Assembly: GCA_010909165.1 (NCBI GenBank)
Contig: MU008164.1
Location: 806,001 to 870,000, forward strand
Reading direction: 5' to 3'
Length of the DNA: 64,000 nt
Source of the DNA: Anthoceros angustus
Taxonomy: Eukaryota > Plantae > Anthocerotophyta
Shown here piece by piece: positions 5,193 to 63,005 of the stretch. Position numbers and translations under genes: made by a program. The notes under the pieces were generated by a model. The model was not told the origin of the DNA. It was given only the letters and a program-made list of their open reading frames with translations, and did no database searches. The number at the start of each line of letters is the position of its first letter. Position 1 is the first letter of the stretch.

Positions 5193-5386
5193 CTACTTTG
5201 AGCCTCGGCCTCGGCCACGGCCGCGACTCCCTCGACCCCTGCTGCCTCCTCTCCCTCCGCCTCTCCCTCCGCCTCTGCCTCTGCCTCTGCCTCCACCTGG
5301 ACCACCGCCCCTTCTGTCCTCTTTCAGTCCCAGTGATTGAATCCCCTCTTCTTCCTACTTCCACTTTCAGTCACCAGCAAAGTGGC
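5193..5386 (-). pseudogene. Isolated copy of the NOL10 terminal RGG-tail exon fragment
   Basis: Matches 9754-~9950 (GRGRGRGGGRGGGRGGSRGRG...SK*). It ends at a junction with the promoter region of cyclophilin-like copy 2. Confidence 0.75.
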
Positions 5387-5465
5387 GCTCCTGCAGGCAG
5401 GATGGTGCGTCTTGGCAAGAAGCAGGCGATGGCGCCAGGCGTGTGAAGAAGGCGGGCGGCTGGGG

Positions 5466-6983: not shown

Positions 6984-8208
6984 CTACTTTGAGCCTCGGC
7001 CTCGGCCACGGCCGCGACTCCCTCGACCCCTGCTGCCTCCTCTCCCTCCGCCTCTCCCTCCGCCTCTGCCTCTGCCTCTGCCTCCACCTGGACCACCGCC
7101 CTTCTGTCCTCTTTCAGTCCCAGTGATTGAATCCCCTCTTCTTCCTACTTCCACTTTCAGGTCACCAGCAAAGTGGCCATTCCTTGGTACAAAGGACACC
7201 TCTCGACTACCGCCATACCTGCCTGCATAAACTTTATCTCTGTGCTCCTTAGATGTCTCCCCACACCAGCTAACTGCTCACCAAGAGGTACATCTTGCAG
7301 TTGTACCAGGGATTGCTTGTTTCTGAAAGCCTGTGCGTGCACCTCATCCTTAGCCTCGTAGAATCTGTTACAGGCACTTGAATATCAGAACCAGCACAAT
7401 ACCTTCAGCTTGAAAAAGAATAATGGCAAGCTTATGGATTCAGACAAGGTCCAGGCTGGCACCTGGGCCCGCGGTCTTTGCTGATTTTCCCTTGCCGTGG
7501 GCTCTTCTGCATCGTCCTCAGATGAGCTCAAGCTGCTGCTGTTGGCTTCTTCACTTTCGTCTGTATCACTCTCATCGACAAGCTTCAAATGCTCATCCTC
7601 CAGAGACACCTTGTTACGTGGTGCATTTGGATGCAACACCTTGTACTCAGGAGCTTCCATGTCAACCTCAAAGTCCTGCAGAATAACGTACAATTTCCAT
7701 GTCTCAGATAGTCAGATAGGAGGATACCAGAAAATGAATAGCTGCTCCCTTTCGAGCAAGCTACACACCTCATCCTGGAACATCTGCAAAACGCTCATCC
7801 TCCAACAAGTCAGTTCCAGCTTTTCTTCTGAGACCCTCGTTTTTGTCATGGTCTTCCTCAGCACCACCCTCCTCGGCAAATTCTGCAGCCATGATGCGTG
7901 ATGCCCAAGCCTTGTTAACCTTCGGCAACCTCCTCTTAACCTGACCAAAGGTAACAGAAAGCCAATTAATGGTTGTTGCTCGAAAAGTCCAAAAGACCAA
8001 CAGGAAAACTCAGTAACCAAAAGCAAATGTGCCCCACCGTGATTCGCGCTGCACGCTCCGATTCCAACCTTGCCTGAATGAGCTGCTGTCTGTTGCGATC
8101 ATAAGCAAAAGGGTCTGCCATGGCTTTAACCTGTGACACAAACATAACTTTCCAAGATCATAAACAGTTGCAGGAGATCAAACTCAAAAGCACACACCAG
8201 TGCAACCA
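6984..8208 (-). pseudogene. Duplicated 3' portion of NOL10
   Basis: Near-identical to 9754-10995 (EDERF..MFQD, DFEVDMEAPEYKVLHPNAP, RGG tail) with small deletions. No 5' part of the gene is present. Confidence 0.75.
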
Positions 8209-8233
8209 GGCGTGTGAAGGCGGGCGGCTGGGG

Positions 8234-9671
8234 ATGGCGCGGCGGCAGCAGCACGATGGCCGCAGGTGTCGCCCAATTCTGCTGGGCCTCCTGCTCGCCT
8301 TGGCCATGGCAGCCGCTGTGTACAAGCTCATGGCTCCCTTGTTCGATTCTCCTGCGCAAGGCCAAGGCTCGGGAGCCAGGGACCGGGCTGGTGCCGGGGC
8401 CGACGCCGATGCCGATGCCGATGCCGAGGCCGAATCCTGCTGCCGCGGTATCGCCCACCAGGAGCTCTGGGGCGAGGTGGTGCGGTCTGGCAGCGAATTG
8501 AAGCTCAATTCCAGCCTCGAGTGCTGCGCGGCTTGCAAGGCTCTGTGCCCGGAGACTGGGCTTTGTTCGTGCAATTCCTGGGTGCATTGCAGGGACCCCA
8601 TCGGATGCGGGGACAAGTTTGGAGAGGCAATCCTCGCTTTGAACACCAGTGTTTGAAGGATTGGAGATGGTGTTGTCTTGGTGCTGAGGTGGCGTGGCGT
8701 GGCGTGGCGTGTTCTGCAGTGCTGGCTGAAGAAGCAGCCTGATGTGATGGCACCTGAGGTGCATGCTGCTGGGAGGAGAGCGTGTGGACGTCTGGGCTGG
8801 TGTATGGGCCCAAGAAGGTGCTTTTCCTGTTGCAAGTCTTGGCAAGGCCTGGCCTGCGTCAGGCTGTGGAGGTGGGGTGGTTTTGGTGCTGATGTGGGCT
8901 TTGGTGCGGGTATTGGATGAAGGATCGTTGCACTGGAAACGACTCAAGGTGTGATACGCATCAAGGTGCGAAGTGTGATGTGTGATGGATTCTGTCATGT
9001 TCTTTTCCTCTTCTTGTGTGTAGCTAAATGTCTATCTCGCCTGGCTGACCGGGTCCTTGTTACAGCTCCGTCCAGACTGTTCACCCCGTTCTGTTCAGTA
9101 CTTCCTGGAGCTTGTCACACTACGTCACTGCGCAGGCTGCCAGTTCTATCGTGCCGAGGGTCGTGGGGATGTCTGGGACCAAGCTGGAGACGTCACTACC
9201 AATGTATGGCCCTTGCTGGATGTTGTAACTATGTGTCACGCTATGCACATGGGCGTGGACAGGACTTGGTACTTACACCTCATCTCGTCCCTGTCTGGAT
9301 ACATGTTGGGACAGGGTTCGTCGACAGGAGGACCGCCGTATGCTCTGGTTCAAGGCACGTTGGCACCTCAAGGTGTGAAGTTCAAGGAGATTCCCAAGGA
9401 GGGACGGCTGGTTGTGAAGAGGGTATGGTGGGTTGGGTGGATGGTGGTCCGGATTTCTTCGTTAGTTTGGCTAACCACGATGAATGGGAGCCGAAGCACA
9501 CCATTTTTGGCCATGTCCTGCCACAGGATATGAAACTTGTCGAAGGTTTGGCTAACTTGCCCACTGTTGCGTCTTCCTGGAGCAGGTCACAGTGGCTGTG
9601 CTACAAGAGCGCGTCAGAATTGTAAGGGTCGTAAGACCAAAGCACGGAGCTTTTCTCATCAATCGTTCTAG
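8234..9671 (+). pseudogene. Cyclophilin-like gene, copy 3 (frameshifted)
   Basis: Near-identical to copies 1 and 2. It has compensating indels near 8320-8340 and shares the exon-2 and last-exon indels of copy 2. Confidence 0.7.
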
Positions 9672-19105: not shown

Positions 19106-22028
19106 ATGGCAATGCAGCTGGAGCTGCCATTGCTGCCACCAGCGCAGGATTTCTCATTTCCGGTTTCCGGCGCAGGAGTGATTCAGGCACGGTCTGCGTT
19201 CTTCCACACGCCCACCACTTTGAGGTCGGGGAAGCTGGGCCAGGTTTGGGCGAATTCCGGATGTGAGTTCCGCAATGGCCTACCAGGCAACAGGCCAGGA
19301 GGTTCAGGAGACTGCAATCAGCGGCCAGGGGGGGCAGCAGGCAACTGCAAAGGTGAAGGCATCAGTCAGAAAGAACGGCAGGAGCTCCTGTGGCAACATC
19401 TGTTTTCGGACCCTTCGGTATGGTGGGACAACAGGGTGGACAAGAAGAGCCCCCGGCATCCCGACTTCAGGCACAAGACCTCCAGGGAGCCGCTGTGGCT
19501 CGACAACACCCTTAAGCCAGCTTGGGTGGACTCGCAGCTGGCCAGGTGGGGTGTTGCGGTGACAGGGGGTGAGGAAGGAGAGGGAGGAGAGGCTTCGAAA
19601 TCGGAAGTGGAAGCCTTGAGGAAACGGTGCGAGGATGCGGTGCTGAGTGAGGCTGTTGAAGCCTTGGAGCTGCTGGTACAGCGGGGGTGTCATGTTACTG
19701 TTGCTGTATTGTACAGAGTCCTCAGGAGGTGCTTGGCGGATAAGGATCTTGGATGTGGTAGGCGTGTTCATGCTCTGGCTGTGGAATGTGGGTTCCAGTC
19801 CAATGCATATTTGGCCACACAGATCATCGGGATGTATGCTGCTCATGGCAAGTTGGAGGACGCAGTGCAGGTGTTCACCAAGGTGAGCAGGCCCGACCTC
19901 TACGTGTGGTCGTCCATTATCCTGGCGCATGCTCGGCTTGGACAGCCCTCGCAGGCTGTCAGCCTTTACAAGCAGATGCGAGCAGGGAGTGTGAAGCCGG
20001 ATAATAGGATTTTCGTGGCAGCCCTGAAGGCTTGTGCCGAGGCCGAGGACCTGGATTCTGGGAAACAGGTGCATGCTGATATCCCGGCAAGTGCTGTGAA
20101 GGGGGATGTGTTTGTTGCCACCAGCCTGGTGAACATGTATGCTAAATGTGGGAGCTTGGAGGAGGCTCGGAAAGTGTTTGACAGCCTACCCACGAGGAAC
20201 GTGGTGACATGGAATGCGATCATAGCAGGATATAGTCAGCAGGGTCTGGGAGGAGAAGCACTGGCATTGTATGAGAGTATGCGACGGGAAGGCATGGTGG
20301 TAGCAGATCATGTGACATTCGTTTCCCTTCTTCAAGCTTGTGCCAGTGTGCCATCGCTGAATCAGGGGAGGGCGATTCACTTACAGGTTCGTGGGAGAGG
20401 GTTGGAAGGCGATGCAGTCATTGGTAACTCCTTGGTGAATATGTATGCGAAATGTGGGAGCTTGGTGGATGCTCGGGAAGTCTTTGATCGGTTGCCCAGG
20501 AGAGATGTGGTGACATGGAATTCCATGATAGCAGGGTATACCCAGCAGGGACTCGGTAGAGAAGCCCTGGCTTTGTATGAAAGTATGCAGCTCGAGGGTG
20601 TAACCCCGGGTGACCATGTTACATTTTTGTGTCTCGTTCAAGCATGCACGAGTGTGGGAGCTCTGCAGCAGGGGAAGGAGATCCACTTACAGATTCGGGA
20701 AAGAGGTCTCGAACCTGATGTTCTCATTGGCAACTGCCTGGTCAGTATGTATGCTAAATGTGGGAGCTTGAAGGAGGCTCGGGAAGTCTTTGACAGTTTG
20801 ACCAGAAAAGATGTTGTGACGTGGAATTCCATGATCTCAGGATACTCTCAGCAGGGGCTTGGGCACGAAGCTCTGGCTTTGTATGCGTCTATGCAACATG
20901 AGGGCATTACACCTGCGAATCGTGTCACGTTTCTGTCCCTGCTTCAGGCATGTGCCTCAGCAGGAGCAGTGCAGCTTGGGAAGCAGCTTCACTTCCAGAT
21001 TCGGGATGGAGGACTTGAAGATGATGGGCAAGTTGGAAACGGCCTCGTGGACATGTATGCTAAGTGTGGGAGCTTGGAGGATGCTGTCGGAGTGTTTCAC
21101 AGTTTACCCAGAAGAGATGTGGTGACATGGACTGCCATGCTCAATGGGTATGCTGTACATAGCGACGGCCCGATGGCAATACAGTGCTTTGAAAAGATGC
21201 TGCAGCAAGGAATCATCCCAGATGAGACGACTTTTCTATGTCTCTTAGTGGCATGCAGTCATGCGGGCCTGGTGCAGGAGGGCCAGAGGTATTTCAGGAT
21301 GATGGAGAAATACGGGACTGTGCCCAATAACTATCACTACAGTTGCATGGTTGATCTCCTTGGCCGGTCAGGCCAACTAGACGAGGCTGAGAATATGTTG
21401 GAAAACGAGTCTGTTGTGAAGGACAGTGTGGCCTGGACAGCTCTACTGAGTGCCTGCAAGGGCTATGGCGATCTTGAGCGAGGAAGGCGATGCTTCGACC
21501 GACTTGTAGCATTGGATCCTAAAGATGCAAGCCCCTACGTCCTTTTGGGAACCATCTATGCAAGTGCGGGCAGGTGGGATGATGTGGACAGGGTTGAGAG
21601 TTTAAGGAAGGCAGCAGGTGCGCTGAAGAAGCCTGCAAAAGCATGCATTGAAGTAGATAGAGAAGTCCACGAGTTCACAGTAGGAGAAGATAGGACCGAC
21701 ATTTCGGCAACGCTGAGGAGCGTGAACATTAGGTTGAAGGAGGAAGGGGCCATGTGCCTCAAACAGAGCTTGTGTTGAAGCCTGTCTCTGAGCAGGAGAA
21801 GGAGGATGCTCTGTGCGGACATGCAGAAAGTTGGCTTTGGCATATGGTCTGCTGAACACACCGGACGGCACAACGTTGTTAGTCACCAAGAATCTGCAGA
21901 TGTGCAATGACTGCCATAGCAGCACAAAGGTCATGTCCCGTCTTGAGAGGCGAGAGATCGTTGTGAGAGACGGACATCGAGTTCATCGTTTTGTGGATGG
22001 CTCTTGCTCGTGCGGAGATCGGCATTAA
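19106..22028 (+). CDS. Paralogous PLS-PPR editing factor with PDF motif and DYW:KP (DRH) domain; two apparent 1-nt frameshifts in the DYW domain
   Basis: ORF 19106..21778 has the same motif architecture. The DYW domain continues (HAEKLA, CNDCH, CSCGDRH* at 22028) after indels at ~21750 (GGGG versus GGGGG in the copy at 27107) and ~21828 (cagaaag versus cagagaag). Confidence 0.9.
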
Positions 22029-22889
22029 CCCGGCGTGGTGTCTGGTGTCCTCGGATTTCCTTCAGAAAAGTCGTTGAAATGCTTGCATCGTGATGATGCT
22101 ATCCATGTCCTTGATGGAATTATTCTGAGAACTTGACCAACGGAAGATGCTCGCCTCGCGCTTCAATGAAGCCATTCCATACGGCAATCGGAGAAGGATG
22201 GAGACTGTGAGGGACCTGAACGGGGAGCAATAGGGCGCGACAAGGCCTTCGAGCAGGCAGTTTGCGCTCATGCCTGCACCGTCAGGGCGTCTAGGGCCTC
22301 ATCACGACCGCACAGGCTTACTCTTTCTTACTAAGAAACAAATGTGAAGTGACACAAATTTTAGTGATCTAAAACTCACTCAGGTTATGGCGGTGAGAAG
22401 CGGCATTAACCTATCAAACCAAAACCAGGCACAGCCGACCAACACGCTCGTGTGCGGGTGAGGACTTGGAAGCGCAAATGAGCTTGCACGGTAAGTAGAA
22501 TTTATTAGAACCGCTTTAATAATCGGATATTAAGAACACTTACCCGTCATGAAATTACACTCCCGGTGGTGTGCTTCTTCTCGGCCGACATCCTGATGGC
22601 TGATCGTGAAAGCTACAATCTCTTCTATAGAACATACCGCATCGCAGGTACATCCACATGCGGTCTTGTTGTGCCGTGCATGCACATGCTGAAAACTCGG
22701 CTTTGACATCCACCACAATCTGCGAATTTGCGATGACTAACTACCACAGAGCACATAGTTTTGGGAGGGGTTCATCGATGTCTGGATGGCTCTTGCTCTT
22801 GCGGAGATAGGCTTTAGACAGCATGCACAGGACATTCGAAGCTCAAATGCTACAACGGTGACAAGGTAAGCACAAGAATCAATATTGTA

Positions 22890-25800
22890 CAGAGTCCTCA
22901 GGAGGTGCTTGGCGGATAAGGATCTGCATGAGGCTAGTGCACAAAGAGAATGCCAGCCATGCGCTCCTTTGTCTTCCTGTCTTCCTGCATAACCGTTGCT
23001 GCAGAGCCTTTCCCAACTATAGTATCTTGCCACAGCGAACAGGGTGGACAAGAAGAGCCCCGGCATCCCGACTTCAGGCACAAGACCTCCAGGGAGCCGC
23101 TGTGGCTCGACAACACCCTTAAGCCAGCTTGGGTGGACTGCAGCTGGCCAGGTGGGGTGTTGCGGTGACAGGGGTGAGGAAGGAGAGGGAGGAGGCTTCG
23201 AAATCGGAAGTGGAAGCCTTGAAACGGTGCGAGGATGCGGTGCTGAGTGAGGCTGTTGAAGCCTTGGAGCTGCTGGTACAGCAGGGTGTCATGTTACTGT
23301 TGCTGTATTGTACAGAGTCCTCAGGAGGTGCTTGGCGGATAAGGATCTTGGATGTGGTAGGCGTGTTCATGCTCTGGCTGTGGAATGTGGGTTCCAGTCC
23401 AATGCATATTTGGCCACACAGATCATCAGGATGTATGCTGCTCATGGCAAGTTGGAGGACGCAGTGCAGGTGTTCACCAAGGTGAGCAGGCCCGACCTCT
23501 ACGTGTGGTCGTCCATTATCCTGGCGCATGCTCGGCTTGGACAGCCCTCGCAGGCTGTCAGCCTTTACAAGCAGATGCGAGCAGGAGTGTGAAGCCGGAT
23601 AATAGGATTTTCGTGGCAGCCCTGAAGGCTTGTGCCGAGGCCGAGGACCTGGATTCTGGGAAACAGGTGCATGCTGATATCCCGGCAAGTGCTGTGAAGG
23701 GGATGTGTTTGTTGCCACCAGCCTGGTGAACATGTATGCTAAATGTGGGAGCTTGGAGGCTCGAAAGTGTTTGACAGCCTACCCACGAGGAACGTGGTGA
23801 CATGGAATGCGATCATAGCAGGATATAGTCAGCAGGGTCTGGGAGGAGAAGCACTGGCATTGTATGAGGTATGCGACAGGAAGGCATGGTGGTAGCAGAT
23901 CATGTGACATTTCCCTTCTTCAAGCTTGTGCCAGTGTGCCATCGCTGAATCAGGGAGGGCGATTCACTTACAGGTTCGTGGGAGAGGGTTGGAAGGCGAT
24001 GCAGTCATTGGTAACTCCTTGGTGAATATGTATGCGAAATGTGGGAGCTTGGTGGATGCTCGAAGTCTTTGATCAGTTTGCCCAGGAGATGTGGTGACAT
24101 GGAATTCCATGAGTATACCCAGCAGGGACTCGGTAGAGAAGCCCTGGCTTTGTATGAAAGTATGCAGCTCGAGGTGTAACCCGGGTGACCATGTTACATT
24201 TTTGTGTCTCGTTCAAGCATGCACGAGTGTGGGAGCTTGGAGGAGGCTTCGAAATCGGAAGTGGAAGCCTTGGAGCTGCCATTGCTGCCACCAGCCTGGT
24301 GAACATGTATGCTAAATGTGGGAGCTCTGCAGCAGGGAAGGAGATCCACTTACAGATTCAGGCACAAGACCTCCAGGGAGCCGCTGTGGCTCGACAACAC
24401 CCTTAAGCCAGCTTGGGTGACAAATCTTGCCCGCCAGCAAGGGAACGCCCTTGCTCCTGACCAACATTCCTCGCAGCCTGATAAGGGGTTGAGAAGATAG
24501 TACTCAAAGCACTCCTTGTTGCATTGGGAATGTGTGGTTATTGCTTTAACAATATGTCAATTGCTTGTGTACTCAGAGCCGGATTAATAGTCTTCATCCT
24601 CCTCATATTCGTCGTTCTTATCATAGTGCAAGCGATACTTGTATGGCTCATTAGCCCCAACATCTTCCACACGCCCACCACTTTGAGGTCAGGAAGCTGG
24701 GCCAGGTTTGGGCGAATTCCGGATGTGAGTTCCGGCCTACCAGGCAACAGGCCAGGAGGTTCAGGAGACTGCAATCAGCGGCCAGGGGGCAGCAGGGGCT
24801 GCAAAGGTGAAGGCATCAGTCAGTCAGAAAGAACGGCAGGAGCTCCTGTGGCAACATCTGTTTTCGGACCCTTCGGTATGGTGGGACAACAGGGTGGACA
24901 AGAAGAGCCCCAGCATCCCGACTTCAGGCACAAGACCTCCAGGGAGCCGCTGTGGCTCGACAACACCCTTAAGCCAGCTTGGGTGGACTCCAGCTGGCCA
25001 GGTGGGGTGTTGCGGTGACAGGGGTGAGGAAGGAGAGGGAGGAGGCTTCGAAATCGGAAGTGGAAGCCTTGAGGGACAGTGCGAGGATGCGGTGCTGAGT
25101 GAGGCTGTTGAAGCCTTGGAGCTGCTGGTACAGCAGGGTGTCATGTTACTGTTGCTGTATTGTACAGAGTCCTCAGGAGGCGGATAAGGATCTTGGATGT
25201 GGTAGGCGTGTTCATGCTCTGGCTGTGGAATGTGGGTTCCAGTCCAATGCATATTTGGCCACACAGATCATCAGGATGTATGCTGCTCATGGCAAGTTGG
25301 AGGACGCAGTGCAGGTGTTCACCAAGGTGAGCAGGCCCGACCTCTACGTGTGGTCGTCCATTATCCTGGCACATGCTCGGCTTGGACAGCCCTCGCAGGC
25401 TGTCAGCCTTTACAAGCAGATGCGAGCAGGAGTGTGAGCCGGATAATAGGATTTTCGTGGCAGCCCTGAAGGTCTGCCGAGGACCTGGATTCTGGGAAAC
25501 AGGTGCATGCTGATATCCCGGCAAGTGCTGTGAAGGGGATGTGTTTGTTGCCACCAGCCTGGTGAACATGTATGCTAAATGTGGGAGCTTGGAGGCTCGA
25601 AAGTGTTTGACAGCCTACCCACGAGGAACGTGGTGACATGGAATGCGATCATAGCAGGATATAGTCAGCAGGGTCTGGGAGGAGAAGCACTGGCATTGTA
25701 TGCGACGGGAAGGCATGGTGGTAGCAGATCATCGCATTCGTTTCCCTTCTTCAAGCTTGTGCCAGTGTGCCATCGCTGAATCAGGGAGGGCGATTCACTT

Positions 25801-26400
25801 ACAGGTTCGTGGGAGAGGGTTGGAAGGCGATGCAGTCATTGGTAACTCCTTGGTGAATATGTATGCGAAATGTGGGAGCTTGGATGCTCGAAGTCTTTGA
25901 TCAGTTTGCCCAGGAGATGTGGTGACATGGAATTCCATGATAGCAGGGTATACCCAGCAGGGACTCGGAGAAGCCCTGGCTTTGTATAAGTATGCAGCTC
26001 GAGGGTGTAACCCGGGTGACCATGTTACATTTTTGTGTCTCGTTCAAGCATGCACGAGTGTGGGAGCTCTGCAGCAGGGAAGGAGATCCACTTACAGATT
26101 CAGGAAAGAGGTCTCGAACCTGATGTTCTCATTGGCAACTGCCTGGTCAGTATGTATGCTAAATGTGGGAGCTTGAAGGAGGCTCAGGAGTCTTTGACAG
26201 TTTGACCAGAAAAGATGTTGTGACGTGGAACTTGGAACAGGCTCACCACTCATGCTCCGCATCCGTTTACAGCAGGACCATCCCCAGGACTCTCTTTGGC
26301 GTTACCGGCTCATCAACCACGTTATCTGACTCCTGCAAGACAGTGAAAGCAAGCATTGAGGCCAGGCTGGGTGTCATTTGAACATGATGGGCAAGTTGGA
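22890..26400 (+). repeat. Scrambled, indel-rich patchwork of PPR gene 19106-22028 fragments and BRF1 3' fragments
   Basis: Two degraded PPR copies (~23040-24250 and ~24660-26230), short shuffled PPR pieces (24240-24420), and inserts matching 28640-28900 (at 24420-24665) and 28995-29150 (at 26221-26378). The joins are 8-10 bp microhomologies. Confidence 0.8.
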
Positions 26401-27391
26401 AACGGCCTCGTGGACATGTATGCTAAGTGTGGAGCTTGGAGGATGCTGTCAGGTGTTTCACAGTTTACCCAGAAGAGATGTGGTGACATGGACTGCCATG
26501 CTCAATGGGTATGCTGTACATAGCGACGGCCCGATGGCAATACAGTGCTTTGAAAAGATGCTGCAGCAAGGAATCATCCCAGATGAGACGACTTTTCTAT
26601 GTCTCTTAGTGGCATGCAGTCATGCGGGCCTGGTGCAGGAGGGCCAGAGGTATTTCAGGATGATGGAGAAATACGGGACTGTGCCCAATAACTATCACTA
26701 CAGTTGCATGGTTGATCTCCTTGGCCGGTCAGGCCAACTAGACGAGGCTGAGAATATGTTGGAAAACGAGTCTGTTGTGAAGGACAGTGTGGCCTGGACA
26801 GCTCTACTGAGTGCCTGCAAGGGCTATGGCGATCTTGAGCGAGGAAGGCGATGCTTCGACCGACTTGTAGCATTGGATCCTAAAGATGCAAGCCCCTACG
26901 TCCTTTTGGGAACCATCTATGCAAGTGCGGGCAGGTGGGATGATGTGGACAGGGTTGAGAGTTTAAGGAAGGCAGCAGGTGCGCTGAAGAAGCCTGCAAA
27001 AGCATGCATTGAAGTAGATAGAGAAGTCCACGAGTTCACAGTAGGAGAAGATAGGACCGACATTTCGGCAACGCTGAGGAGCGTGAACATTAGGTTGAAG
27101 GAGGAAGGGGGCCATGTGCCTCAAACAGAGCTTGTGTTGAAGCCTGTCTCTGAGCAGGAGAAGGAGGATGCTCTGTGCGGACATGCAGAGAAGTTGGCTT
27201 TGGCATATGGTCTGCTGAACACACCGGACGGCACAACGTTGTTAGTCACCAAGAATCTGCGAATGTGCAATGACTGCCATAGCAGCACAAAGGTCATGTC
27301 CCGTCTTGAGAGGCGAGAGATCGTTGTGAGAGACGGACATCGAGTTCATCGTTTTGTGGATGGCTCTTGCTCGTGCGGAGATCGGCATTAA
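26378..27391 (+). pseudogene. C-terminal duplicate of the PPR-DYW:KP gene (P2-L2-S2-E1-E2-DYW:KP in frame)
   Basis: ORF 26378..27391 reads continuously ...KKPAKACIEV...EGGHVPQTELVLK...CGHAEKLA...MCNDCH...CSCGDRH*. It is near-identical to 21010-22028. Confidence 0.8.
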
Positions 27392-28260
27392 CCCCGGCGT
27401 GGTGTCTGGTGTCCTCGGATTTCCTTCAGAAAAAGTCGTTGAAATGCTTGCATCGTGATGATGCTATCCATGTCCTTGATGGAATTATTCTGAGAACTTG
27501 ACCAACGGAAGATGCTCGCCTCGCGCTTCAATGAAGCCATTCCATACGGCAATCGGAGAAGGATGGAGACTGTGAGGGACCTGAACGGGGAGCAATAGGG
27601 CGCGACAAGGCCTTCGAGCAGGCAGTTTGCGCTCATGCCTGCACCGTCGGGGCGTCTAGGGCCTCATCACGACCGCACAGGCTTACTCTTTCTTACTAAG
27701 AAACAAATGTGAAGTGACACAAATTTTAGTGATCTAAAAACTCACTCAGGTTATGGCGGTGAGAAGCGGCATTAACCTATCAAACCAAAACCAGGCACAG
27801 CCGACCAACACGCTCGTGTGCGGGTGAGGACTTGGGAAGCGCAAATGAGCTTGCACGGTAAGTAGAATTTATTAGAACCGCTTTAATAATCGGATATTAA
27901 GAACACTTACCCGTCATGAAATTACACTCCCGGTGGTGTGCTTCTTCTCGGCCGACATCCTGATGGCTGATCGTGAAAGCTACAATCTCTTCTATAGAAC
28001 ATACCGCATCGCAGGTACATCCACATGCGGTCTTGTTGTGCCGTGCATGCACATGCTGAAAACTCGGCTTTGACATCCACCACAATCTGCGAATTTGCGA
28101 TGACTAACTACCACAGAGCACATAGTTTTGGGAGGGGTTCATCGATGTCTGGATGGCTCTTGCTCTTGCGGAGATAGGCTTTAGACAGCATGCACAGGAC
28201 ATTCGAAGCTCAAATGCTACAACGGTGACAAGGTAAGCACAAGAATCAATATTGTACAAG
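27392..28260. repeat. Direct repeat of 22029-22890 (PPR 3' flank)
   Basis: Near-identical sequence that differs mostly by homopolymer length. Confidence 0.85.
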
Positions 28261-34089: not shown

Positions 34090-37000
34090 ATGGGGGGCGA
34101 CAAGGCTCAATCCAATGCTGCTGCTCCAGGGAAGAAGAAGGGAGCGTCGAAGGGATCCAAGGGAGCGCGGGACGAGGCTGATGAGATCGGGGACGACGGA
34201 GTTGTTGCTGACAAGGTTGTGCCCGGAGGAAAGAAGAAGGGGAAAGGGAAGAAGGGATCCAGGCAGGCTTTCGACGATGATGATTATTTTATCGAGCCGG
34301 AGGCCGGATCTGGTAATTCCAAGGCGACCATGGGAGAAAAGCAGGTGCCTGTTAATGAAATTTTGGTAGGTAATGAGGTTGGGATTGACAGGACGCGGGA
34401 GCAGTTGAATGGTGAGGAGACGGGGAAGGATGTGACGGATGAGGTCGCATTCACGGGTAAGAAGAAGGCCAAGGGGAAGGGGAAGAAGACTGCTTCCTAC
34501 AAGCAACTGCAAGACTTTGATGAGGACTTTGCGCCGGATGAGGAGGTTGGACGATTCGGCGTTGTGGAGGAGTTGCCAGTGGTAGAGGAGGCTGAAATTT
34601 TGCCGGAGGTAGTAGATGAGGTAGTGTTTTCGGGGAAGAAGAAGAGTAAAGGGAAGAAGAGCTCGGTGCAGGTGCCGGATTCCGAGTTCTTGGTAGACAC
34701 TTCAGTTTATGCTTACGGTTTGGAGTATGAAGCAGCCGTTTTGTCGGATGCGGAAGAGCCAATTCTCTTTACGGGAAAGAAGAAGGCGAAAAAGGGGAAG
34801 AAGGAAAAGGTGGTGGTGAATGATGATGAGTACGCTGTGCCTGCCGATTCTGACGCTGTTTTGGACTCTGAAGCCCCGGAGGAGCCTGCGGTCTCTCCGG
34901 TGGCTGATAGTAAAACTGTTCCTCCCCCGGAGATGGGGGAGGATGACATTCTGCAAGCTGATGGGAAGAAGAGCAAAAAAGGGAAAAAGGGAGGCAAGGC
35001 GCAAGCTTATGAGGAGATTAATGCTGTTCTGGCTAAGCTGGAGGCTCCCAAGGTTCAAGCCCCAAAGGCTAGTGTGGATCCTGTCGTCCAGTCTGAGGCT
35101 GAGCCTCCACAGGTCTCAAGTTCATCAGCCTCTTCAAAGAAGAAGCAAAAGAAGGCCACGAAAAAGAGTGGGAGAACTGCGCAGGAGGAGAAGGATCTGT
35201 TTTCCATACTTATAGAATTGGATGGACCGGTAGTGGATAGAACCCCGGAAGCACCGGCTCCTGTTTCTGAGGCTGCATCTGCCGAGGATGCCAAACAGGA
35301 GTCAGTTGATGTCACTGCATCAGCACCCGTTGAGAGCACCACGGAAGTAGAAGAGGCTGTGCAGTCAGCAGCTGCCAAGAAGAAAAAGAAGAAAAAGGAA
35401 AAGGAGAAAGCAAAAGCAGCTGGGACTGACAAACAAGCTGAAGCAGCAGAAGAAACCAAAGTAGTCAAAGAAGAGTCAAAGGCTAAGGTACCTGATAAGA
35501 AATTGCCAAAACATGTGCGTGAAATGCAAGAGCGCCTGGCGCGAATGAAGGAGCTTGAAGAAAAGAGAAGGCAAGAAGAAGAAGAGAGACGTCGAAAAGA
35601 AGAAGAGGAACAAGCAAGGCTGGAAGAATTGGAGAGGCAGAAGGAGGAGGCCAAACGAAGGCGCAAGGAGCGAGAAAAAGAGAAGCTCTTGCAGAAGAAG
35701 AAAGAGGGGAAGCTGCTGAATGAGAAGCAGAAACAGGAGCAGAGACGGTTAGCAGCCATGAGAGAGCAGTTTATTGCTCAGACTGGGGGTCCTTTAGGTG
35801 ACGATTTAGCTTCTGAGGAAGTGAAGGCGAGACCCAAACCCAAATACGAGACAAAAAAGAAAAAACGCCCTAGTGCAGCTCAGACTGACAGCTCACTAGA
35901 TGTTGACACACCTGCAGTACCTGAGGTTCAAGAGGTTGAGGTAGATGCTACTTTGGAGCTGCCACAAGTGCCAGAGGAAGTGGTTGAGCCAGAAGAGCCT
36001 TTGAAGGAGGAGGAGCAGGAGGAGGAAGAGGAACAGGAGCAGGAGCACGAGGAGGAGGAGGAGGAGGATGAGGAGGAGGAGGAGGACTGGGATGCTAAGA
36101 GCTGGGAGCAAGAAGTTGCTCTTCCTGTTATAAAATCAGCGTTTGCAGAAGAAGAAGAAGAAGACTCTAGCTCTACCACAAGTGGAAAGCTGTCGAGGGC
36201 CCTTTCTAGGCAAGATTCTAGCAGGTCTTCTGTTTCACGGCAGGACTCAGTGAGCAGTGTCCCTTCCAAGCCACCAGCAGGGCCGCCCAAGGCCTCACCA
36301 GTGAAAGTGAAGCCTGGACTGCAACAGCAGAAAGAGAGTGAAAATGAAGGTGAAACCGACAGTGAAGATGAAACTGAGAGCGAGGAAGAAGATGCAGACG
36401 TGAAGAGGAGACAAGATGCCAAAGCAAAACGAGAGGCTAGGAAAGCAGAAGCTCTGACTAAGCGGAGTGCAGAAGATCTGAGGTCACCAATCTGCTGTAT
36501 TCTTGGCCACGTCGATACAGGGAAGACAAAATTGCTCGATTGTATCCGAAGGACAAATGTTCAAGAAGGAGAGGCTGGTGGGATCACTCAGCAGATTGGA
36601 GCCACTTATTTCCCCATGGAAAACATCCGAGAGAGAACAAAAGAAATACAGTCTCAGGCTAAACTTCGAGTACCAGGCTTGCTTGTGATTGACACACCAG
36701 GCCATGAGTCCTTCACGAATCTACGGGCGAGAGGTTCTAGCTTATGTGACATAGCCATTCTGGTGATTGACATTATGCATGGTCTGGAACCACAGACAAT
36801 AGAATCCTTGAATTTGCTGAAATCCCGGAAGACACCATTTGTGGTCGCCTTAAATAAGGTGACAATGCCATTGCCTCTCTGCCCGCATGTTGCACCACAA
36901 GTTCCTTGACAAGACAAGATGGGTGTTACTTCTGGCTTTGCTTTATGCTATTTGTCTCTCATGGTGTGCGACTAGGTTTCTGACCAGTCAAGCTGATGGG

Positions 37001-39497
37001 TGTTCCTCCTGAGTGAGAACAGGTGGATAGGTTATATGGGTGGAAAGCCTGTCCAAATAAGCCAATCAAAGATGCTTTCAATCAACAGACACAAGATGTG
37101 AAGAAAGAATTTGAGACTCGACTGACCCAAGTATGTTGCATCACCTCCTATCTAGGATTTTGGTGTGTTGGAGTTGCTATTATTTGGGAGGTGCTTGCTC
37201 TGTTGAGTGACCTCTAGTTCAGGAATAATTGCAGCCGCTTTGACTTGTTGATGAAATCTTTTAGTGTCGTCAATGTCACGGAATTCCACTCTTTTGCAGA
37301 TTGTCACACAGCTGAAAGAGCAGGGGCTGAACTCCGAGTTGTACTACAGGAACAAAGAAATTCGGAAGTTTATAAGCATTGTTCCTACAAGCGCAATCAG
37401 GTTGGCCACAGAACTTTGGGAAAGTGTTGGGCAAATATTCTCATCTCTCAGTTGATGCCCCACCCGTTCTTTAACTGGAATTCTCCTTCCATGGTTGGCA
37501 GTGGAGAAGGTGTCCCCGATATTCTCATGTTGTTGATACAGTTAACACAGAAGATGATGGAGGACAAGCTCATGTACATCAGTGAAGTGCAGGTGGGTTC
37601 TGGTTTTCCAACATGAGCTTGCCTGTTCTCTGAGATTTCTCTGCGTTGTGAAGAAAACCACTGGAAATTTAATGTGCTTTTACATGTGTATATTGCAGTG
37701 TACCGTTTTGGAGGTGAAGGTGGTAGAGGGATTGGGCACAACTATTGATGTCATTCTGGTGAACGGTGTCCTCCATGAAGGAGATCAGATTGTTGTGTGT
37801 GGAATGCAGGTGAGAGTTTGACCAAGTTTTGCTCCTTCGTGGGTAGACAAGTTATTACCCCAGGTATTCCGAACATCTTCTGGTGGTGCTGACTTTAGTC
37901 TGTATAATCCTCAGGAGCCCATCGTCACGACAATTAGAGCTTTGTTAACCCCACACCCGATGAAGGAGCTCCGAGTGAAGGTGAGTGACGTCAGCCCGGT
38001 GGATTGTAATCAGAGGAGTTACATCAACTGTGTATGGTCATAATGACCTCATGGTGCAGAGAAGAGTTGTCTTCTCACTCTCTCAGGGTGACTCTCTTGT
38101 TCTGTGTGGCAGGGATCATACCAGCATCACAAGGAGTTGAAAGCAGCTCAAGGAATCAAATTAACAGCTCAGGTGCGTGAATCCTATATTTTTACTGGAG
38201 GGGTGGTGTTATGTATCATGTTTGGTTCGTTGTTTCTTGCTAGGTTCTCTTCTCTGTACGTTGTCCAGTGTGCAAGATTTCATCTCGTCTGAGTTTTTTT
38301 TTTAACTTGCAATGTAGGGCCTTGAGCATGCAATAGCTGGCACTCAATTATATGTTGTTGGACCGGAGGATGACCTTGAAGATGTAAAGGAGGAAGCTAT
38401 GCAGGATATGAAGAGTGTCATGAGTCGCATTGACAAAAGTGGGGAGGGCGTGTGTGTACAAGCATCTACCCTTGGGTCATTGGAAGCCCTGTTGGAGTTT
38501 TTGAAGAGTCCTAGTGTGAAGATTCCTGTCAGTGGCATTGGCATTGGACCTGTCCATAAGAAAGATGTCATGCGGGCCAGTGTCATGCTTGAGAGAAAAC
38601 GGAAGGAGTATGCAACCATTCTGGCGTTTGATGTGAAGGTTACTCCTGAAGCAAAGGAGCTGGCAGAGGAATATGGTGTGAAGATCTTTATGGCAGATAT
38701 CATATACCACTTGTTTGATCAGTTTACAGCTTATATGAACAGTGTGAAGGAAGAGAAGCGGAAGGAGTCAGCTGAAGAAGCAGTGTTCCCATGTATTCTT
38801 GAAATTCTCCCACAGTGTGTTTTCAACAAGAAGGACCCTATTGTGGTTGGCGTGAACGTGGTGGAAGGCATTGCAAAAGTGAGTGGTCTTCGTGCTTCAC
38901 CTCACATTCTCTTGGCTGTCATTTGAGATGAACTCTGCCGAAGTTCGACCATTTGACATTCTGTGTATGTTTGTGTGGCAGGTTGGGACACCATTATGTG
39001 TGCCTTCCAAAGAATACATTGCCATAGGGAAGATAGCCTCAATTGAAGTTAATCACAAAGATGTGGACACAGCCAAGAAGGGTCAAAGTGTGGCCATGAA
39101 GGTTAGGAACCTTCCCTTGTTGAAGCGGTTTGGTTTTGTTGCTCTTTTGGTATTTGTAGTGTACTGAATCTTCGACCTGTCTTGTTGTCTGTCAGATTGT
39201 AGGAACCAATGCAGAGGAGACGCAAAAAATGGTGGGAAGGCATTTCTTTGTTGAAGACAATCTTGTCAGCACCTTGACAAGGAATTCAATCGACCTACTT
39301 AAGGAAAACTACAGGGTAAGAGGAGACTCATGGTATCTTGTAGGCTTATTACAGTACCTATTGGGTTGCGGTATACAGTGCCGTTAATGGTGTTGCCGCT
39401 GATGAGACATATCACACTGGATGCGTTTCAGGATGATTTGTCTAATGAAGACTGGAGGCTGGTGGTAAAGCTTAAAAAGCTTTTCGAGATTCCTTGA
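34090..39497 (+). CDS. eIF5B: Eukaryotic translation initiation factor 5B
   Basis: Long charged N-terminus, G-domain [65 protein letters not shown]|[52 protein letters not shown], and a last exon [21 protein letters not shown]. Confidence 0.96.
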
Positions 39498-47264: not shown

Positions 47265-49113
47265 TCAGCCGTTATGCGCACGATGATCAATGACAAACTT
47301 TCGTAACCGATGCAAGGCAACATGCATTGTTTGATCATCTACCATGGCAAAGCATAGTCTGAACCAGCCAGGTTCCTTGCACCGGCAGGCACTTCCCGGA
47401 GTGACGTTCAGGCCCACATTATAGAGTAACTCCCTGAACAGACTCAGCTCGCCGTCTCTGTTCTTGATCCTTGGTAAGGGCCTTATCCAGCAAAAGAAGC
47501 CGGCATCACATTCTACAAATTCAATGCCAGCTTGCTGCAATCCGTGACGCACCACTCTCCAACGTTCCCTCAGTCTCCTCTGATTCTCCGGGATATAAGA
47601 TTTCACAAATTCCTTGTCCGAAAGGACAGAATGAAGAACCTGTTGTGTCTCGGTGGAGACCGAGCTGAACCGAGTCAACCTGCCTGCAGCATCAAGAACC
47701 TGTTGATTCCACGAATAAATGAGCCCCACCCGGAAACCTGGGATGCCAAGAACCTTCGACAGTCCATAAATTAGGTGAACTCTGCTCGCACACTGTGGCC
47801 GCTGGGTCACAAGCTTCGCAAAGCTGACAAACTTCGCACTCCCGTGTACGCAACCGGCGTAAATTTCATCACAGATGAGATGAATATCTTTCTCCCTCAC
47901 AAAATCCAGCAGCTGCAGAAGGTACTCCTCATCATACACTGTGCCGACAGGATTGCAAGGCGAAGTCATCAGCAAGGCCCTCACAGTCCTCCCCTGTTTC
48001 TTGGCCTCTTCGTACGCCTTCTCCAGCGAACCTTTGGTCAACAAAAAGTTGTTCTTGCTACTTGACTGGACTGGAATGAGTTCCACCTGACTTCGCCATT
48101 TGACATCCCTCTCAAACCTGAAACCGGCGACACAAAATAAGCACAGAGAAGTTGACAAAACACACACAAACAAAACCTTCTCAACAACTTTTCCAGCTAA
48201 GAAACCACTGCCGCGCACCCGCTGTACACTGGAGCAGGAACAAGGACCGCATTCCCAGCCTCTGCCAAGCAGAAAGCCAACAACTCGATGGCCGCGGTTG
48301 CCCCGGTGGTGACAACCATCCTATCCGCGTCAAAATGCAAGTTGCCGCCAAAAGCCTCGTCCATGAAGCTGGCCAGGGCCTGCAAGAGGGCATCGCCCGC
48401 AGGCAGTCAGCCACCAAAGCATGCGGCTTAACCAAACCTCGACCTTTACTCGCAATGCAGCTTACCGATCGGAAGATCGGAAGTCCATGGTACACATCGG
48501 GGTAGCCGGCTATGGCCGTAAAGCCGAGAATGCTCAGAACCTCCTCCGCGGGACCAGTACCATGGGAGGCGAACCACTGGTCCAGCAGACTCAGTGACAG
48601 CTGCCATCACACACAAAAACACACCATACTACATCAAAATCGCACCACATTCTCGTCCACCTTTGCAAGCACCGCACGAACGCAGGAACGCAGGCACGCA
48701 AACCCTAGCATCTACCCAGGCGCGCTTCCCGACGCCGGCCCGCTCACCGTGTTCTCAGACAAGCCAAGCTGGATGCAGCCGGCCGGGTTGCGCTGAGGGT
48801 GGAACGCGTTGCGGTTGGACTCCTCCCAGCCCTGGTAGTAGGCCGCCACCTCGGAGTCGGGCTGGAGGACGGCCACAGCCCGCGCCGCCACAGCCACGGA
48901 CGCATGCGAGTGCGCGTCCGAGCCCGGTCCTGCGTCGCGCGCTTCCTGCTCGTGATCCGGCGTCTGCTCCGGCTCCGCCGCCTGGACGTGGGACTGGCGG
49001 GATCGCCGCAGCCGCAGCTGCATGAAGTAAAAGAGCGCGCAGGGGATGATGGAGCCGAACACGATGCCCAGGCGGCCCTGGAGCACGCCTTGCAGCGGCA
49101 CGATCACGCGCAT
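47265..49113 (-). CDS. ACC-synthase-like PLP-dependent aminotransferase of the ACS10/ACS12 type
   Basis: N-terminal MRVIVPLQGVLQGRLGIVFGSIIPCALFYFMQL, then YYQGW...NPAGCIQLGLSEN, VVTTGATAAIELLAFCLAEAG...VPAPVY, SPCNPVG, ICDEIYAG, YGLSKVLGIPGFRVG, TRFSSVS, LNVTPGSAC and GWFRLCFA. Confidence 0.92.
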
Positions 49114-59540: not shown

Positions 59541-59632
59541 TGGATGGAAGTTAACACTTCGTGAGGATGGAAGTTAACACTTCATGTGGATGGAAGTTAG
59601 CATTTCATGTGGATCGAAGTTAACACTTCATG
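59541..59632. repeat. Four tandem 23-bp units with a quasi-palindromic core
   Basis: (t/a)ggatggaagttaacacttc(g/a)tg occurs four times with 1-3 mismatches. Confidence 0.9.
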
Positions 59633-59773
59633 ACTTGAGGGTCAGTTATATGCTCTATGCTAACTGTTTAGGGTGCGGCCCGGTTTGAAATCCATGTTTG
59701 GCGCGTCGTCCTGTGTAAAGGTGGCCGACGGCTTGCTAGCAGAGCTGGCTTCCGCCGAGCAAGCCTGTCGGCC

Positions 59774-62242
59774 ATGGAAGCCACAGTGCTGGCCTGGCAA
59801 GCCCCCGGCGCGGGCTGCATGAAGGCGGCCCGGAACGGGCCGTCTTCCTCGCTCGTCAAGGTGGTGGCTGCGAGACGGGTCCCAGTCGCGCCGGGAGGCG
59901 AGCCGGCCTTGCTGGTGGTCAGAAGGATCAAGAAATGGCAGCAGGAAAAGGAAAAGGAACAGGAAAAGGCGGCGCCGGAGAAGGAACGGGAAAAGGCGGC
60001 GCCGGAGAAGGGACGGGCAAAGGCGGCGCCGGAGAAGGAACGGGCAAAGGCGGCGCCAGAGAAGGAGACGCAGCAGTACCGGCTGAAGGAAGGCGAGTGG
60101 GTTGCGGAGCTGGCGGACAGGCTTGGAGTCCGGGTGCAGGATCTGCAGGCGCTCAACCCGAGCGTGAACCTGGACCGGGTGTTCCCCCGGCAGGTGATCC
60201 TCATCCCCAAGCCGAAAGGAAGTTTTGCGGAAGGCGCACGGGAAGCGCTCGCTCTCCGGCCTTCTGTGCAGATTGTGGACTCCCTGGAAGCGGAATCGGA
60301 GCCCCAAGGGGAGGCGGAGCAGGATTTGGCAAAGCGGGGCCAGGACGGCGGAGCCGCGTTTCGTGCTGCTGAGTCGTCGGGAAAGAGCCAGGATGGGAGC
60401 ACCAAGGACAGCGGAGTCCGGTCTGGCGAATCGCGAGGCGCGGAACCTTCGGAGGAGGCGATGGAGGAGTATATGGTCCAGCCCGGGGATTATCTTGCGG
60501 ACATCGCTGCCAGGCACGGAGTGAAGCTCAAGGCGTTGATTGCCCTAAACAAGCTGAATTACGAGGATCGGATTCGAGTCGGCCAGATTCTTTTGCTGCC
60601 TCCGGATGAGCCATCTCATGTACTTGCCTGATGCCCCTGTCGCCAGTTTTGCTCACCATGTGAAGTTGAGGCTATAGTAGCTGAATTGTCCCGTCCCTTG
60701 TGGTGCTACAGAATGAAGGATCCTGTCTTTGCTCTGACCGTTTGCTCAGGCCTCTTTCTTGCCAGTCGTTGTCCATTTCAAGGTAGAAAACAGCCCCCAG
60801 TGTTGCTTGATAGCACAGATCCGTTCTGTTGCAGTGAGGGGAGGGGCAGAGTGGCTGATGTTCGTGTGTGCTGGTGGTGTTTGTCTTCAGTTTGAGATTC
60901 AGAGAACGTCGCAGGTGTCGTCTGTGTGGACGGTTGCGAGAGGGCTTCCGTATGATCCCATCTTCCAGGCGGCAGCTCTGCTGTCCGGCATTATTGTTGC
61001 TTGTGGGATGGTGGCTGCAAAGGGGAGGCAGCAGCCGGTGCAGGAGGGAGGGAGGAAGGTGCGGGTCCTGGGATCTGAGTTCTCGGGGAGATCGGGTCTG
61101 GGGTTTTGGTTTGGCCGGAGCAGGTATTCGCGCCAGTTGGAAGCTGCTGCCCAGTCGGTTGCATCCACTATCCTGTCTACCGTCCAGGGGGCAGATGGGG
61201 CGATGGTTGGGCATGGGTTTGCCACTGGGAAGTCTCAGCAGGAGGCCATCGAAGTAGCTTTCCGAGCAGCGTTGAGCTCGCTGAAACAGCCCTTGGCAAC
61301 CGTGGCTGTCTTTTCGCTGAGCAGGCTTCCTCAGAGCCGCATCCCAGCTGGTAAGAATGCTTCCACTGAGATGAGTGCATGTGGCATTTCGTTGTCCTGA
61401 GGCGACATTCGTCGGGCATTTGAAGCTTAGCAAAGCTGCTGCCGTGTTGATGCAGGTGTGAAAGCAGCAGATGCTGCAGCCTTGCTGACCAAGCTCATAC
61501 CGGAAGAGCTTCCTTCGTTCTCGGGAGTCATGACCTTGGGTGGAGGCGGGTTTCTCAGCCTGGCCAACTTGGAGAGCAAGGAGGGATCGCTTGAGGAGTG
61601 GGCTGCAGTGCTGCTATTCGCTGCCCCCGAGAACTCTATCAAGGTGGGCTGGGCTGCGCAAGGTGAGGGCGTCCAGCAGGCTGTCCAAACTGCTGCGGAA
61701 GAGCTAAAGCGGAAAGTAAGCCATGCTGCTTGAGTTTTCTTTCTCCACAGCCAAGTGTATATTTTTGAGATGCATTCTCGTTAATGACTGTCATCTCTGG
61801 ACGAAAATGTCTCTCTTCGTCCCTGTCAGCTTGTGCGCAGTGCAAAACTCAAAGCTGTGGTTGCCAATGTCTCGGGGAACAACGGGAAGGCCGTTCTGGA
61901 TGAGGTGAGTAGTGCAACTGTCGGCTTACTAGCTTCAACCTGGTTTTCGCTCCTGGGCTGACTCTGATGCATCTGTTGTGGTTGCAACAGCTTGCATCCA
62001 GTTTCCCCCAGGCGTCACTCTACGAAGTAAGTGCAGCAGGAGCCAAGCTTACAACAGCCTCGGATTGGCAGTTGACGGTGGGAGACGCCCCATCATCAGT
62101 CATTGCATCTGAAGGTGTCATCCTGTTTGGATTGACCACTGACGCAGACTTCGGTGGTGCCTTCTTCGCTAGTGTTTTAGGTCAGTGGTTGTATGGAAGG
62201 CACGTCCATGTGACCGCAAGACCACCATTATCACCAAAATAA
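59774..62242 (+). CDS. Putative organelle-targeted LysM-LysM-TM-FIST-like protein (3' end uncertain)
   Basis: Exon 1 (59774-60619) encodes two LysM motifs (YRLKEGEWVAELADRLGVRVQDLQALNP...RQVILIP and YMVQPGDYLADIAARHGVKLKALIALNKL...GQILLLP). A phase-consistent GT-AG intron 60620-60890 leads to a hydrophobic helix (PIFQAAALLSGIIVACGMVAA). Further exons 61456-61715, ~61830-61904 and ~61991-62180 splice in frame. Confidence 0.7.
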
Positions 62243-62444: not shown

Positions 62445-63005
62445 CTACTCCGGTCCGCTCCCAGGAACAAGCTACATGGAACAAAACAACCGGGTTCGGT
62501 CAGGTCAGCCTGTAGATGATAACATTCGGTGAAGAACCCCCGCTCTTGTCAGGCATAGAAAATACAGGAATGGGGAACTCACAATGGCAATGTTGTTCCC
62601 GTTGAGAAGGATCTGATCGAGCTTGGTTATCCGACGTCCCTCCGGTGTGATCTCACTGTAACCAAAATACGAAAGAGTCAGCTGCAGCTCCCAAATTCCT
62701 CCAACCAGGGACGCAGCAGAAAGTGCGGGGAGCTCACATACTATTCCGTTACGTCCTCCAGCACCATGTTGACGTAGACATCAAACCCTCGCAGTGTGCC
62801 CACCAGCTCCTTGTCGCCCTTCATTATCACCCATATCTTGGATCCTATGCATCTGTCGATCAACTCTGCAACGTCCAACAAACACACACGCAACCCTTAC
62901 ACTCAGATACAAAGCAACAGACATGAGCATCCAATGGAAGATAGCAGTTCAGATATCAACACCATCCCCACCGGAGGGCATCAGATGTGAAGGATTGTGC
63001 GACAT
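62445..63005 (-). CDS. LSM5: U6 snRNA-associated Sm-like protein LSm5, 4 exons
   Basis: [11 protein letters not shown]|[41 protein letters not shown]|[25 protein letters not shown]|LVPGSGPE*, with GT-AG introns. Not visible in the ORF track. Confidence 0.95.

Follow-up and report, generated by a model that had tools for sequence, protein, structure and literature searches.

A five-exon gene of the hornwort Anthoceros angustus predicted to encode a membrane-anchored LysM protein with an orphan C-terminal tail

Gene model and layout of the predicted protein

The window analyzed here, 64,000 nt of Anthoceros angustus (assembly GCA_010909165.1, contig MU008164.1; all coordinates are positions within it), is gene-dense nuclear DNA with short introns. 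Its + strand carries a gene extending from an ATG at 59774 to a TAA at 62240-62242, for which five exons join into an unbroken frame of 631 codons (including the stop). The predicted product contains two LysM modules, one transmembrane (TM) helix, and, after the helix, a tail of ~300 amino acids (aa) without recognizable relatives. Most likely, this is a lineage-restricted nuclear gene for a single-pass membrane protein of ~630 aa, possibly an organellar one. An earlier note, made from the sequence alone, had described a putative plastid-targeted LysM-LysM-TM protein with a FIST-like C-terminus that might bind plastid peptidoglycan or sense cyanobiont wall fragments; its observation was partly confirmed and its interpretation is partly supported. 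The locus is composed as follows (all on the + strand; TRF, Tandem Repeats Finder):

59542..59633, +, 23-bp tandem repeat GGATGGAAGTTAACACTTCATGA, 4 copies, 88% matches (TRF), in the promoter/5′-untranslated region (UTR)
59774..60619, +, exon 1, 282 codons: leader, KE-rich repeat, LysM1, acidic linker, LysM2
59774..59938, +, N-terminal 55 aa, net charge +7, Ala/Val/Pro/Gly/Arg-rich (composition and hydropathy)
59950..60066, +, 27-bp in-frame tandem repeat, 4.3 copies, 93% matches (TRF), encoding EKEREKAAP-type nonapeptides
60077..60208, +, LysM1, aa 102-145, PF01476 at 29.3 bits (E=8.3e-7), the more divergent copy
60209..60469, +, acidic linker, 87 residues, Glu/Ala/Ser/Gly-rich, net charge -8, coding score 0.44
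60470..60601, +, LysM2, aa 233-276, PF01476 at 48.2 bits (E=1e-12)
60620..60890, +, intron 1, 271 nt, CAT/GTACTT ... TCTTCAG/TTT, phase 0 join of exons 1 and 2
60891..61350, +, exon 2: juxtamembrane stretch, TM helix, basic linker, beginning of the orphan C-terminal region
60960..61019, +, TM helix IFQAAALLSGIIVACGMVAA, exon 2 residues 24-43, Kyte-Doolittle (KD) hydropathy 2.14 over 19 residues
61456..61715, +, exon 3: orphan C-terminal region, GT..AG borders, phase 1
61830..61904, +, exon 4, 25 codons, GT..AG borders, phase 0
61991..62242, +, exon 5, 83 codons and the TAA, the weakest portion of the model

The start codon lies in a GCCATGG context, with an in-frame stop 35 codons upstream and no earlier start codon after that stop; the 300 nt 5′ of it lacked coding signal in all frames. 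All four introns (271, 105, 114, and 86 nt) have GT..AG borders. If intron 1 were retained, translation would end after four codons, at TGA 60629-60631. The earlier note had placed the ATG (59774), this TGA (60631), and the end of the TAA (62242) correctly, and its join of exons 1 and 2 across intron 60620-60890, drawn from splice phase, holds: the borders are GT..AG, the phase is 0, and the frame continues through all five exons.

Coding potential was scored with a codon model (bits per codon) trained on six clearly real genes or exons from the same window (among them 34090-36909, 38399-38926, 47265-48218, and a 431-aa open reading frame [ORF]), which themselves scored between 0.17 and 0.47. 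In the proposed frame, exons 1 to 4 scored 0.41, 0.22, 0.27, and 0.50, respectively, and no more than 0.06 as whole exons in the other frames. The introns stayed at or below 0.005 in the continuing frame, with a single off-frame value of up to 0.12. No paralogue of the gene was found within the window, and an Rfam scan yielded no match. An LSm-like exon (62741-62893, - strand) lies ~500 nt beyond the stop codon; the two genes converge, which restricts the space available for an additional 3′ exon. On the other side, 140 nt 5′ of the ATG, in the short gap after a neighbouring Myb/coiled-coil (TRB-like) gene, the 23-bp repeat GGATGGAAGTTAACACTTCATGA may be a promoter element.

The first 55 aa comprise 10 Ala, 8 Val, 5 Pro, 5 Gly, and 5 Arg, but only 3 Ser and 2 acidic residues. 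Hydropathy in exon 1 peaks at a KD of 0.93, and a hydrophobic core like that of a signal peptide is absent. Judged from composition and hydropathy, the leader thus resembles an organellar presequence; of the Ala/Arg/Ser-rich, transit peptide-like N-terminus previously described, the Ala/Arg-rich, presequence-like character stands, whereas enrichment in Ser does not. The two LysM modules, as claimed earlier, are independently supported: scanned alone, each spans the full PF01476 profile (positions 1-43 of 43) and exceeds its gathering score (20.9 bits), and entire exon 1 matches the profile in two stretches (E=3.5e-19). The acidic linker between them gave no family match in the Pfam scan and is probably disordered. 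Exon 1 encodes a single Cys and no CxC motif.

When a single-pass protein is defined by one hydrophobic segment of ~20 residues with a KD above 1.6, only IFQAAALLSGIIVACGMVAA (60960-61019) qualifies; the next-best segment anywhere in the protein reaches 1.23, in agreement with the one TM helix seen before. A helix at residues 23-45 also appears in the (low-confidence) AlphaFold2 (AF2) model of exon 2. The flanks of the helix carry a charge of 0 on the N side and of +4 on the C side. Because of the latter, the positive-inside rule would place the tail on a cytosol- or stroma-like face of the membrane and the LysM pair across from it.

Relatives of the LysM modules

Database, profile, and fold searches were run exon by exon, so that a remote match spread across exons could be missed. 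In a word search, exon 1 retrieved generic LysM matches, the best of which covered 15-23% of the exon and all of which looked bacterial. LysM2 is 50-52% identical to bacterial relatives over ~45 aa, including 52% to a LysM of a membrane-anchored three-LysM bacterial protein (P0003) whose gene sits between murD and ftsW in a MurE-MurF-MraY-MurD-LysM-FtsW cluster; two other relatives (P0004 and P0008) combine LysM with an M23 domain, P0004 in the order TM-LysM-LysM-M23. A pattern scan of prokaryote genomes with LysM2 returned LysM of Chloroflexota and similar bacteria at 41-53% identity, and no cyanobacterial match. Among PDB sequences, the closest chain was 4uz2 (E=6.5e-10), the LysM of a Thermus P60 endopeptidase, followed by Ecp6 and LytE, whereas the LysM of human SB145 (2djp) matched weakly (E=4e-4). 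The profiles of plant receptor LysM all remained under their cut-offs on this protein (PF23473 on LysM2: 20.8 bits, cut-off 29.3). The modules are of the bacterial cell-wall type; from a module of 45 aa, the evolutionary origin is not inferable. As an aside, the gene for the three-LysM protein (L001 4001-5032; also L002 and L003) is an unusual occupant of the dcw cell-wall and division cluster within which it lies.

The likeness to these bacterial multi-LysM wall proteins is restricted to the LysM modules. Shared with P0003 and P0004 are a single TM anchor, linkers between the LysM (Ala/Pro-rich in the bacterial proteins), and the lack of Cys pairs; however, their anchor is N-terminal and their LysM are periplasmic, whereas here the helix follows the LysM pair and precedes a large C-terminal region. 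Similarly, LysM2 aligns over its full length with LysM of solved structure (4uz2/4uz3 of the T. thermophilus P60 endopeptidase, 4b8v of Cladosporium Ecp6, and 8i2e of Bacillus subtilis LytE; E=6.5e-10 to 1.2e-6), but these are secreted soluble proteins or hydrolases and have neither a TM helix nor a counterpart of the tail. Solved LysM modules such as these bind polymers of N-acetylglucosamine (GlcNAc).

Nor does the layout correspond to a described class of plant LysM proteins. A signal peptide and three LysM packed through CxC disulfides characterize LYK and LYP, along with a kinase or a glycosylphosphatidylinositol (GPI) signal or short tail; LysMe consist of 100-120 aa with a single LysM and come from intronless genes; and LysMn contain one LysM, are non-secretory, with or without an F-box, and lack a TM helix (PMC2728734). 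Like these classes, the protein is the product of a LysM-bearing plant nuclear gene, and LYK and some LYP also have one TM helix after the LysM region. It differs from LYK in having no kinase, two LysM, a single Cys in exon 1, and no hydrophobic N-terminal core; from LYP/CEBiP and LysMe by its five exons, ~630 aa, two LysM, missing signal peptide, and ~300 aa after the helix; and from LysMn/F-box-LysM by two LysM, a strong TM helix, and no F-box match. Pfam detected no kinase family on any exon, and a GPI signal and an F-box were likewise not found. The earlier statement that the layout lies outside LYK, LYP, LysMe, and F-box-LysM was thus borne out.

The only LysM protein known from plastids is DipM, a protein with LysM and a LytM/M23 domain that acts in the intermembrane space and is needed for chloroplasts to divide in moss; such DipM/NlpD-type, nucleus-encoded hydrolases of plastid peptidoglycan occur in Cyanophora and Physcomitrium, and moss DipM1 reaches the chloroplast surface despite having no predicted transit peptide (PMC4015805). 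Like DipM, the protein described here is nucleus-encoded, starts with bacterial-type LysM repeats, and belongs to a lineage retaining genes for plastid peptidoglycan. Unlike it, the LysM pair is followed by a TM helix and an orphan region, whereas DipM is defined by its C-terminal LytM/M23 domain and has no TM helix in mid-protein; PF01551 (LytM/M23) was not detected on exons 2-5 at E<=10, and the NCBIfam DipM models were matched through LysM only (20-27 bits, cut-offs 740-900). A LysM-LysM-TM-X layout, as predicted here, is therefore outside the published plant LysM classes and outside DipM. A literature search on LysM-TM proteins of hornworts and on LysM genes induced by symbiosis turned up mention of a LysM receptor kinase only.

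The C-terminal tail and competing explanations

In Pfam and NCBIfam scans of every exon, sub-pieces included (Pfam down to E<=10), LysM was the only family returned. A word search with exon 2 was blank, as were tblastn-confirmed scans of raw DNA from metagenome contigs (exons 3 and 2) and prokaryote genomes (exon 3); for exon 3, matches were lacking in Pfam, NCBIfam, the PDB, metagenomes, genomes, and plasmids. An exhaustive HMMER scan of exon 2 against 1.84 billion representative proteins retrieved only P0001 and P0002, both rejected as spurious translations of tandem repeats (10 and 5 matched stretches, respectively, with incidental Pfam noise only). Two further candidates were dismissed: designed SAKe proteins, returned by the PDB sequence search with exons 2, 3, and 5 with 0 significant stretches, and the N-terminal domain of Ribosomal_S5 on GHGFATGKSQQEA..AL (E=0.056; 13.9 bits, below the cut-off of 27.1). 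Foldseek against the PDB, with low-confidence single-exon models as queries, reached no better than E=1.6; the matches, with no FIST among those listed, were dismissed as meaningless.

How these blanks are to be read was gauged with a control from the window itself, an intronless protein of 960 aa with pentatricopeptide repeats (PPR). Its best matches were only 50-57% identical, on short Logan contigs, several of them ending in DRH or GRP, i.e., of hornwort type; the named matches were Diphasiastrum, Adiantum, Cryptomeria, and others, and the protein itself did not appear in the list. The collections searched therefore lack the source genome and its near relatives. The blank searches thus exclude a conserved family in well-sampled plants, algae, and bacteria, but allow for orthologues in other hornworts, and "orphan" may only mean "hornwort-specific".

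Several alternatives concern the tail and the continuity of the gene. The earlier note read the tail as a FIST_N-like sensory fold, through which binding of plastid peptidoglycan by the LysM pair would be signaled across the membrane. What speaks for it is an impression of alternating strand and helix in two halves (a strand with Gly, an Ala-rich helix, a hydrophobic strand, a helix, and a Gly-rich strand, twice), which we take to be the order of elements in FIST_N and which served as a lead, not as a test; the low-confidence, single-exon AF2 model of exon 3 also alternates helix and strand. However, FIST_N (PF08495) and FIST_C (PF10442) were not matched on any exon piece even at E<=10, and nothing of the kind came from NCBIfam, the PDB, the single-exon folds, or the HMMER scan with exon 2. 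By tblastn at E<=10, no FIST gene was found among 72,556 plasmids. Moreover, the similarity of the two α/β repeats on which the proposal had been based is not significant (Smith-Waterman score of 29, reached by 111 of 2000 shuffles; shuffle mean 21.1, standard deviation 4.1), and the remaining C-terminal region of ~245 aa is too short for FIST_N and FIST_C together. The FIST reading is thus highly improbable. Conversely, the gene may be young, fast-evolving, or decaying, with LysM as its sole conserved functional module and with the sequence after the TM helix as a recent, possibly de novo, extension of no defined fold or function. This would agree with the lack of relatives of exons 2 and 3 in any collection searched, with the very low AF2 confidence, and with a codon score and a GC content at third codon positions (GC3) that fall towards the 3′ end, where exon 5 is indistinguishable from non-coding DNA. 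Yet the coding signal of exons 2-4 is as strong as that of the window's PPR genes, four clean introns preserve the frame, the databases lack this lineage, and poor AF2 models are to be expected from single-sequence domain fragments whatever the sequence; we regard this explanation as quite unlikely. Quite improbable too, in our view, is that two genes were fused by a splice-phase artefact, one for a soluble 285-aa protein that has LysM only and stops at TGA 60631, and one for a separate TM/orphan protein starting from an in-frame ATG near 60858. Intron 1, two to three times as long as the others and with the weakest donor of the four, would fit, as would an in-frame Met 11 codons 5′ of exon 2 and the fact that the fusion is seen in no related protein. 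Against it, the 226 nt from TGA 60631 to the first in-frame ATG would have to hold a 3′-UTR, a poly(A) site, a promoter, and a 5′-UTR, but contain no canonical poly(A) motif, only AATGAA; the interval lacks coding signal in the frame of exon 2, the pyrimidine tract at the acceptor is good, and the junction is in phase 0.

Location in the endomembrane system or the plasma membrane, unrelated to plastids, is an unlikely alternative of a different kind. The protein could be a receptor-like sensor of fungal chitin or of bacterial or cyanobiont walls, with the LysM pair outside, or a type II protein similar to LysMD3/4, with the LysM in the cytosol. Animal LysMD3/4 have LysM N-terminal to one TM helix and no signal peptide, a layout similar to the one described here, and the weak PDB match to 2djp points in the same direction. 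The KE-rich and the acidic low-complexity stretch are of a sort typical for cytosolic regions, the flank charges predict the N-terminus out and the C-terminus in, and plant LysM proteins are mostly surface receptors (PMC2728734). In contrast, there is no signal peptide (maximal KD 0.93), and it would be unusual for ~300 residues with two folded domains to cross the membrane of the endoplasmic reticulum in this way; CxC motifs are missing, with a single Cys, as are a kinase, a GPI signal, and an F-box, and LysM2 is nearer to bacterial LysM than to the plant receptor profiles. An organellar route looks more likely than a secretory one, given the missing signal peptide and the ~300 residues that come before the only TM helix.

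Possible role of the protein and other features of the window

We favor, at about an even chance, one hornwort gene for a membrane-anchored LysM protein that binds a glycan and carries a novel tail. On one face of the membrane, the LysM pair would bind a GlcNAc-containing strand, either peptidoglycan or a polymer of the chitin type; the orphan tail would lie on the other, cytosol- or stroma-like face, and the protein would act as a membrane tether or as a transmembrane reporter for the glycan. The most attractive location would be the plastid envelope, the site of the peptidoglycan layer, and the plastid-peptidoglycan version of this reading is given roughly one chance in three. It is consistent with the lineage because hornworts are reported to retain all enzymes of plastid peptidoglycan synthesis (PMC8964177), and DipM is a precedent for a nucleus-encoded LysM protein acting on plastid peptidoglycan (PMC4015805). 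That peptidoglycan rather than chitin would be the ligand is suggested only by the kinship of the LysM modules with those of bacterial cell-wall proteins; plastid targeting and peptidoglycan binding are plausible inferences only.

Several observations weigh against this picture. For LysM to reside in the intermembrane space in this topology, ~250 residues would have to cross the inner envelope from the stroma, and nothing like an export signal is seen. Hydroxylated residues are few in the leader (Ser+Thr, 4 of the first 50), and the ligand specificity of LysM is unreadable from sequence. Of the four donors, that of intron 1 (CAT/GTACTT), which is also the longest intron, is the weakest. Exon 5 scores -0.013 bits per codon, though this is the best of its frames; a score this low is found in only 1.5% of true coding windows of 83 codons, and one this high in 3.4% of off-frame windows. 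Its GC3 is 0.46 (exons 1-4, 0.60-0.74). Because of the low score and a perfect consensus donor (GTAAGT) within the exon at 62027, the last 83 aa are uncertain, their coding status being ambiguous. The single-exon AF2 folds of the tail are of low confidence, with a predicted local distance difference test score (pLDDT) of 51.5 for exon 3 and 42.9 for exon 2, and no orthologue of the gene was found in the collections searched, which barely contain the hornwort lineage.

In its most specific form, the reading describes a hornwort-specific envelope protein whose LysM pair grips plastid peptidoglycan in the intermembrane space, and whose previously unseen stromal domain couples this wall to stromal machinery for division, the pyrenoid, or plastid shape. 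We consider this a long shot; if true, plastid peptidoglycan would thereby have its first transmembrane tether or sensor. Plastid peptidoglycan of bryophytes is known mainly through its synthesis genes and one hydrolase, DipM, and no protein is known to us that ties it to the envelope or reports on its state. In hornworts, cells usually contain one plastid, some plastid division genes have been lost, and the peptidoglycan pathway has been kept, which makes a membrane-anchored, hornwort-specific LysM protein a reasonable candidate. At present, the gene is a predicted orphan whose glycan-binding module is generic, and its value is that of a cheap hypothesis for groups able to transform Anthoceros, not of a discovery.

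Elsewhere, the window contains the following genes (the last four recognized by eye only):

16135-19017 (-), 19106-21778 (+), and 26378-27391 (+), intronless genes for PPR editing factors that carry a KPAKA box and end in ..CSCRDRH or ..CSCGDRH
34090-36909 and 38399-38926, +, eIF5B-like gene
47265-48218, -, exon of an aminotransferase resembling 1-aminocyclopropane-1-carboxylate synthase
1586-2881, +, 431-aa ORF, sulfotransferase-looking, with a C-terminal TM helix
57154-57558, +, single-Myb TRB/SMH-like gene

Two of the PPR genes stand head to head, 88 nt apart. PPR proteins of the DYW:KP type are restricted to hornworts, lycophytes, and ferns, the endings "DRH" and "GRP" marking two hornwort subgroups (PMC9478123). 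Judging from their motifs, the PPR genes of the window belong to the "DRH" subgroup and are candidate factors for U-to-C editing (PMC9478123). Blocks of the region 19685-22767 (families D4, D8, D9, and D11) recur 3.6 and 5.4 kb downstream, in 23284-28134, at 100% identity, which reflects a very recent segmental duplication, with a partial PPR copy left behind, or else an assembly artefact. Between 3589 and 10920, a segment of ~1.8-2.8 kb is present in three copies of 89-100% identity, spaced by ~1795 and ~2770 nt; it includes a cyclophilin-like stretch in the ORFs 4454-5110, 6246-6764, and 8951-9625, and a Cys-rich, secreted-looking ORF at 5337-5885 and 8120-8656.

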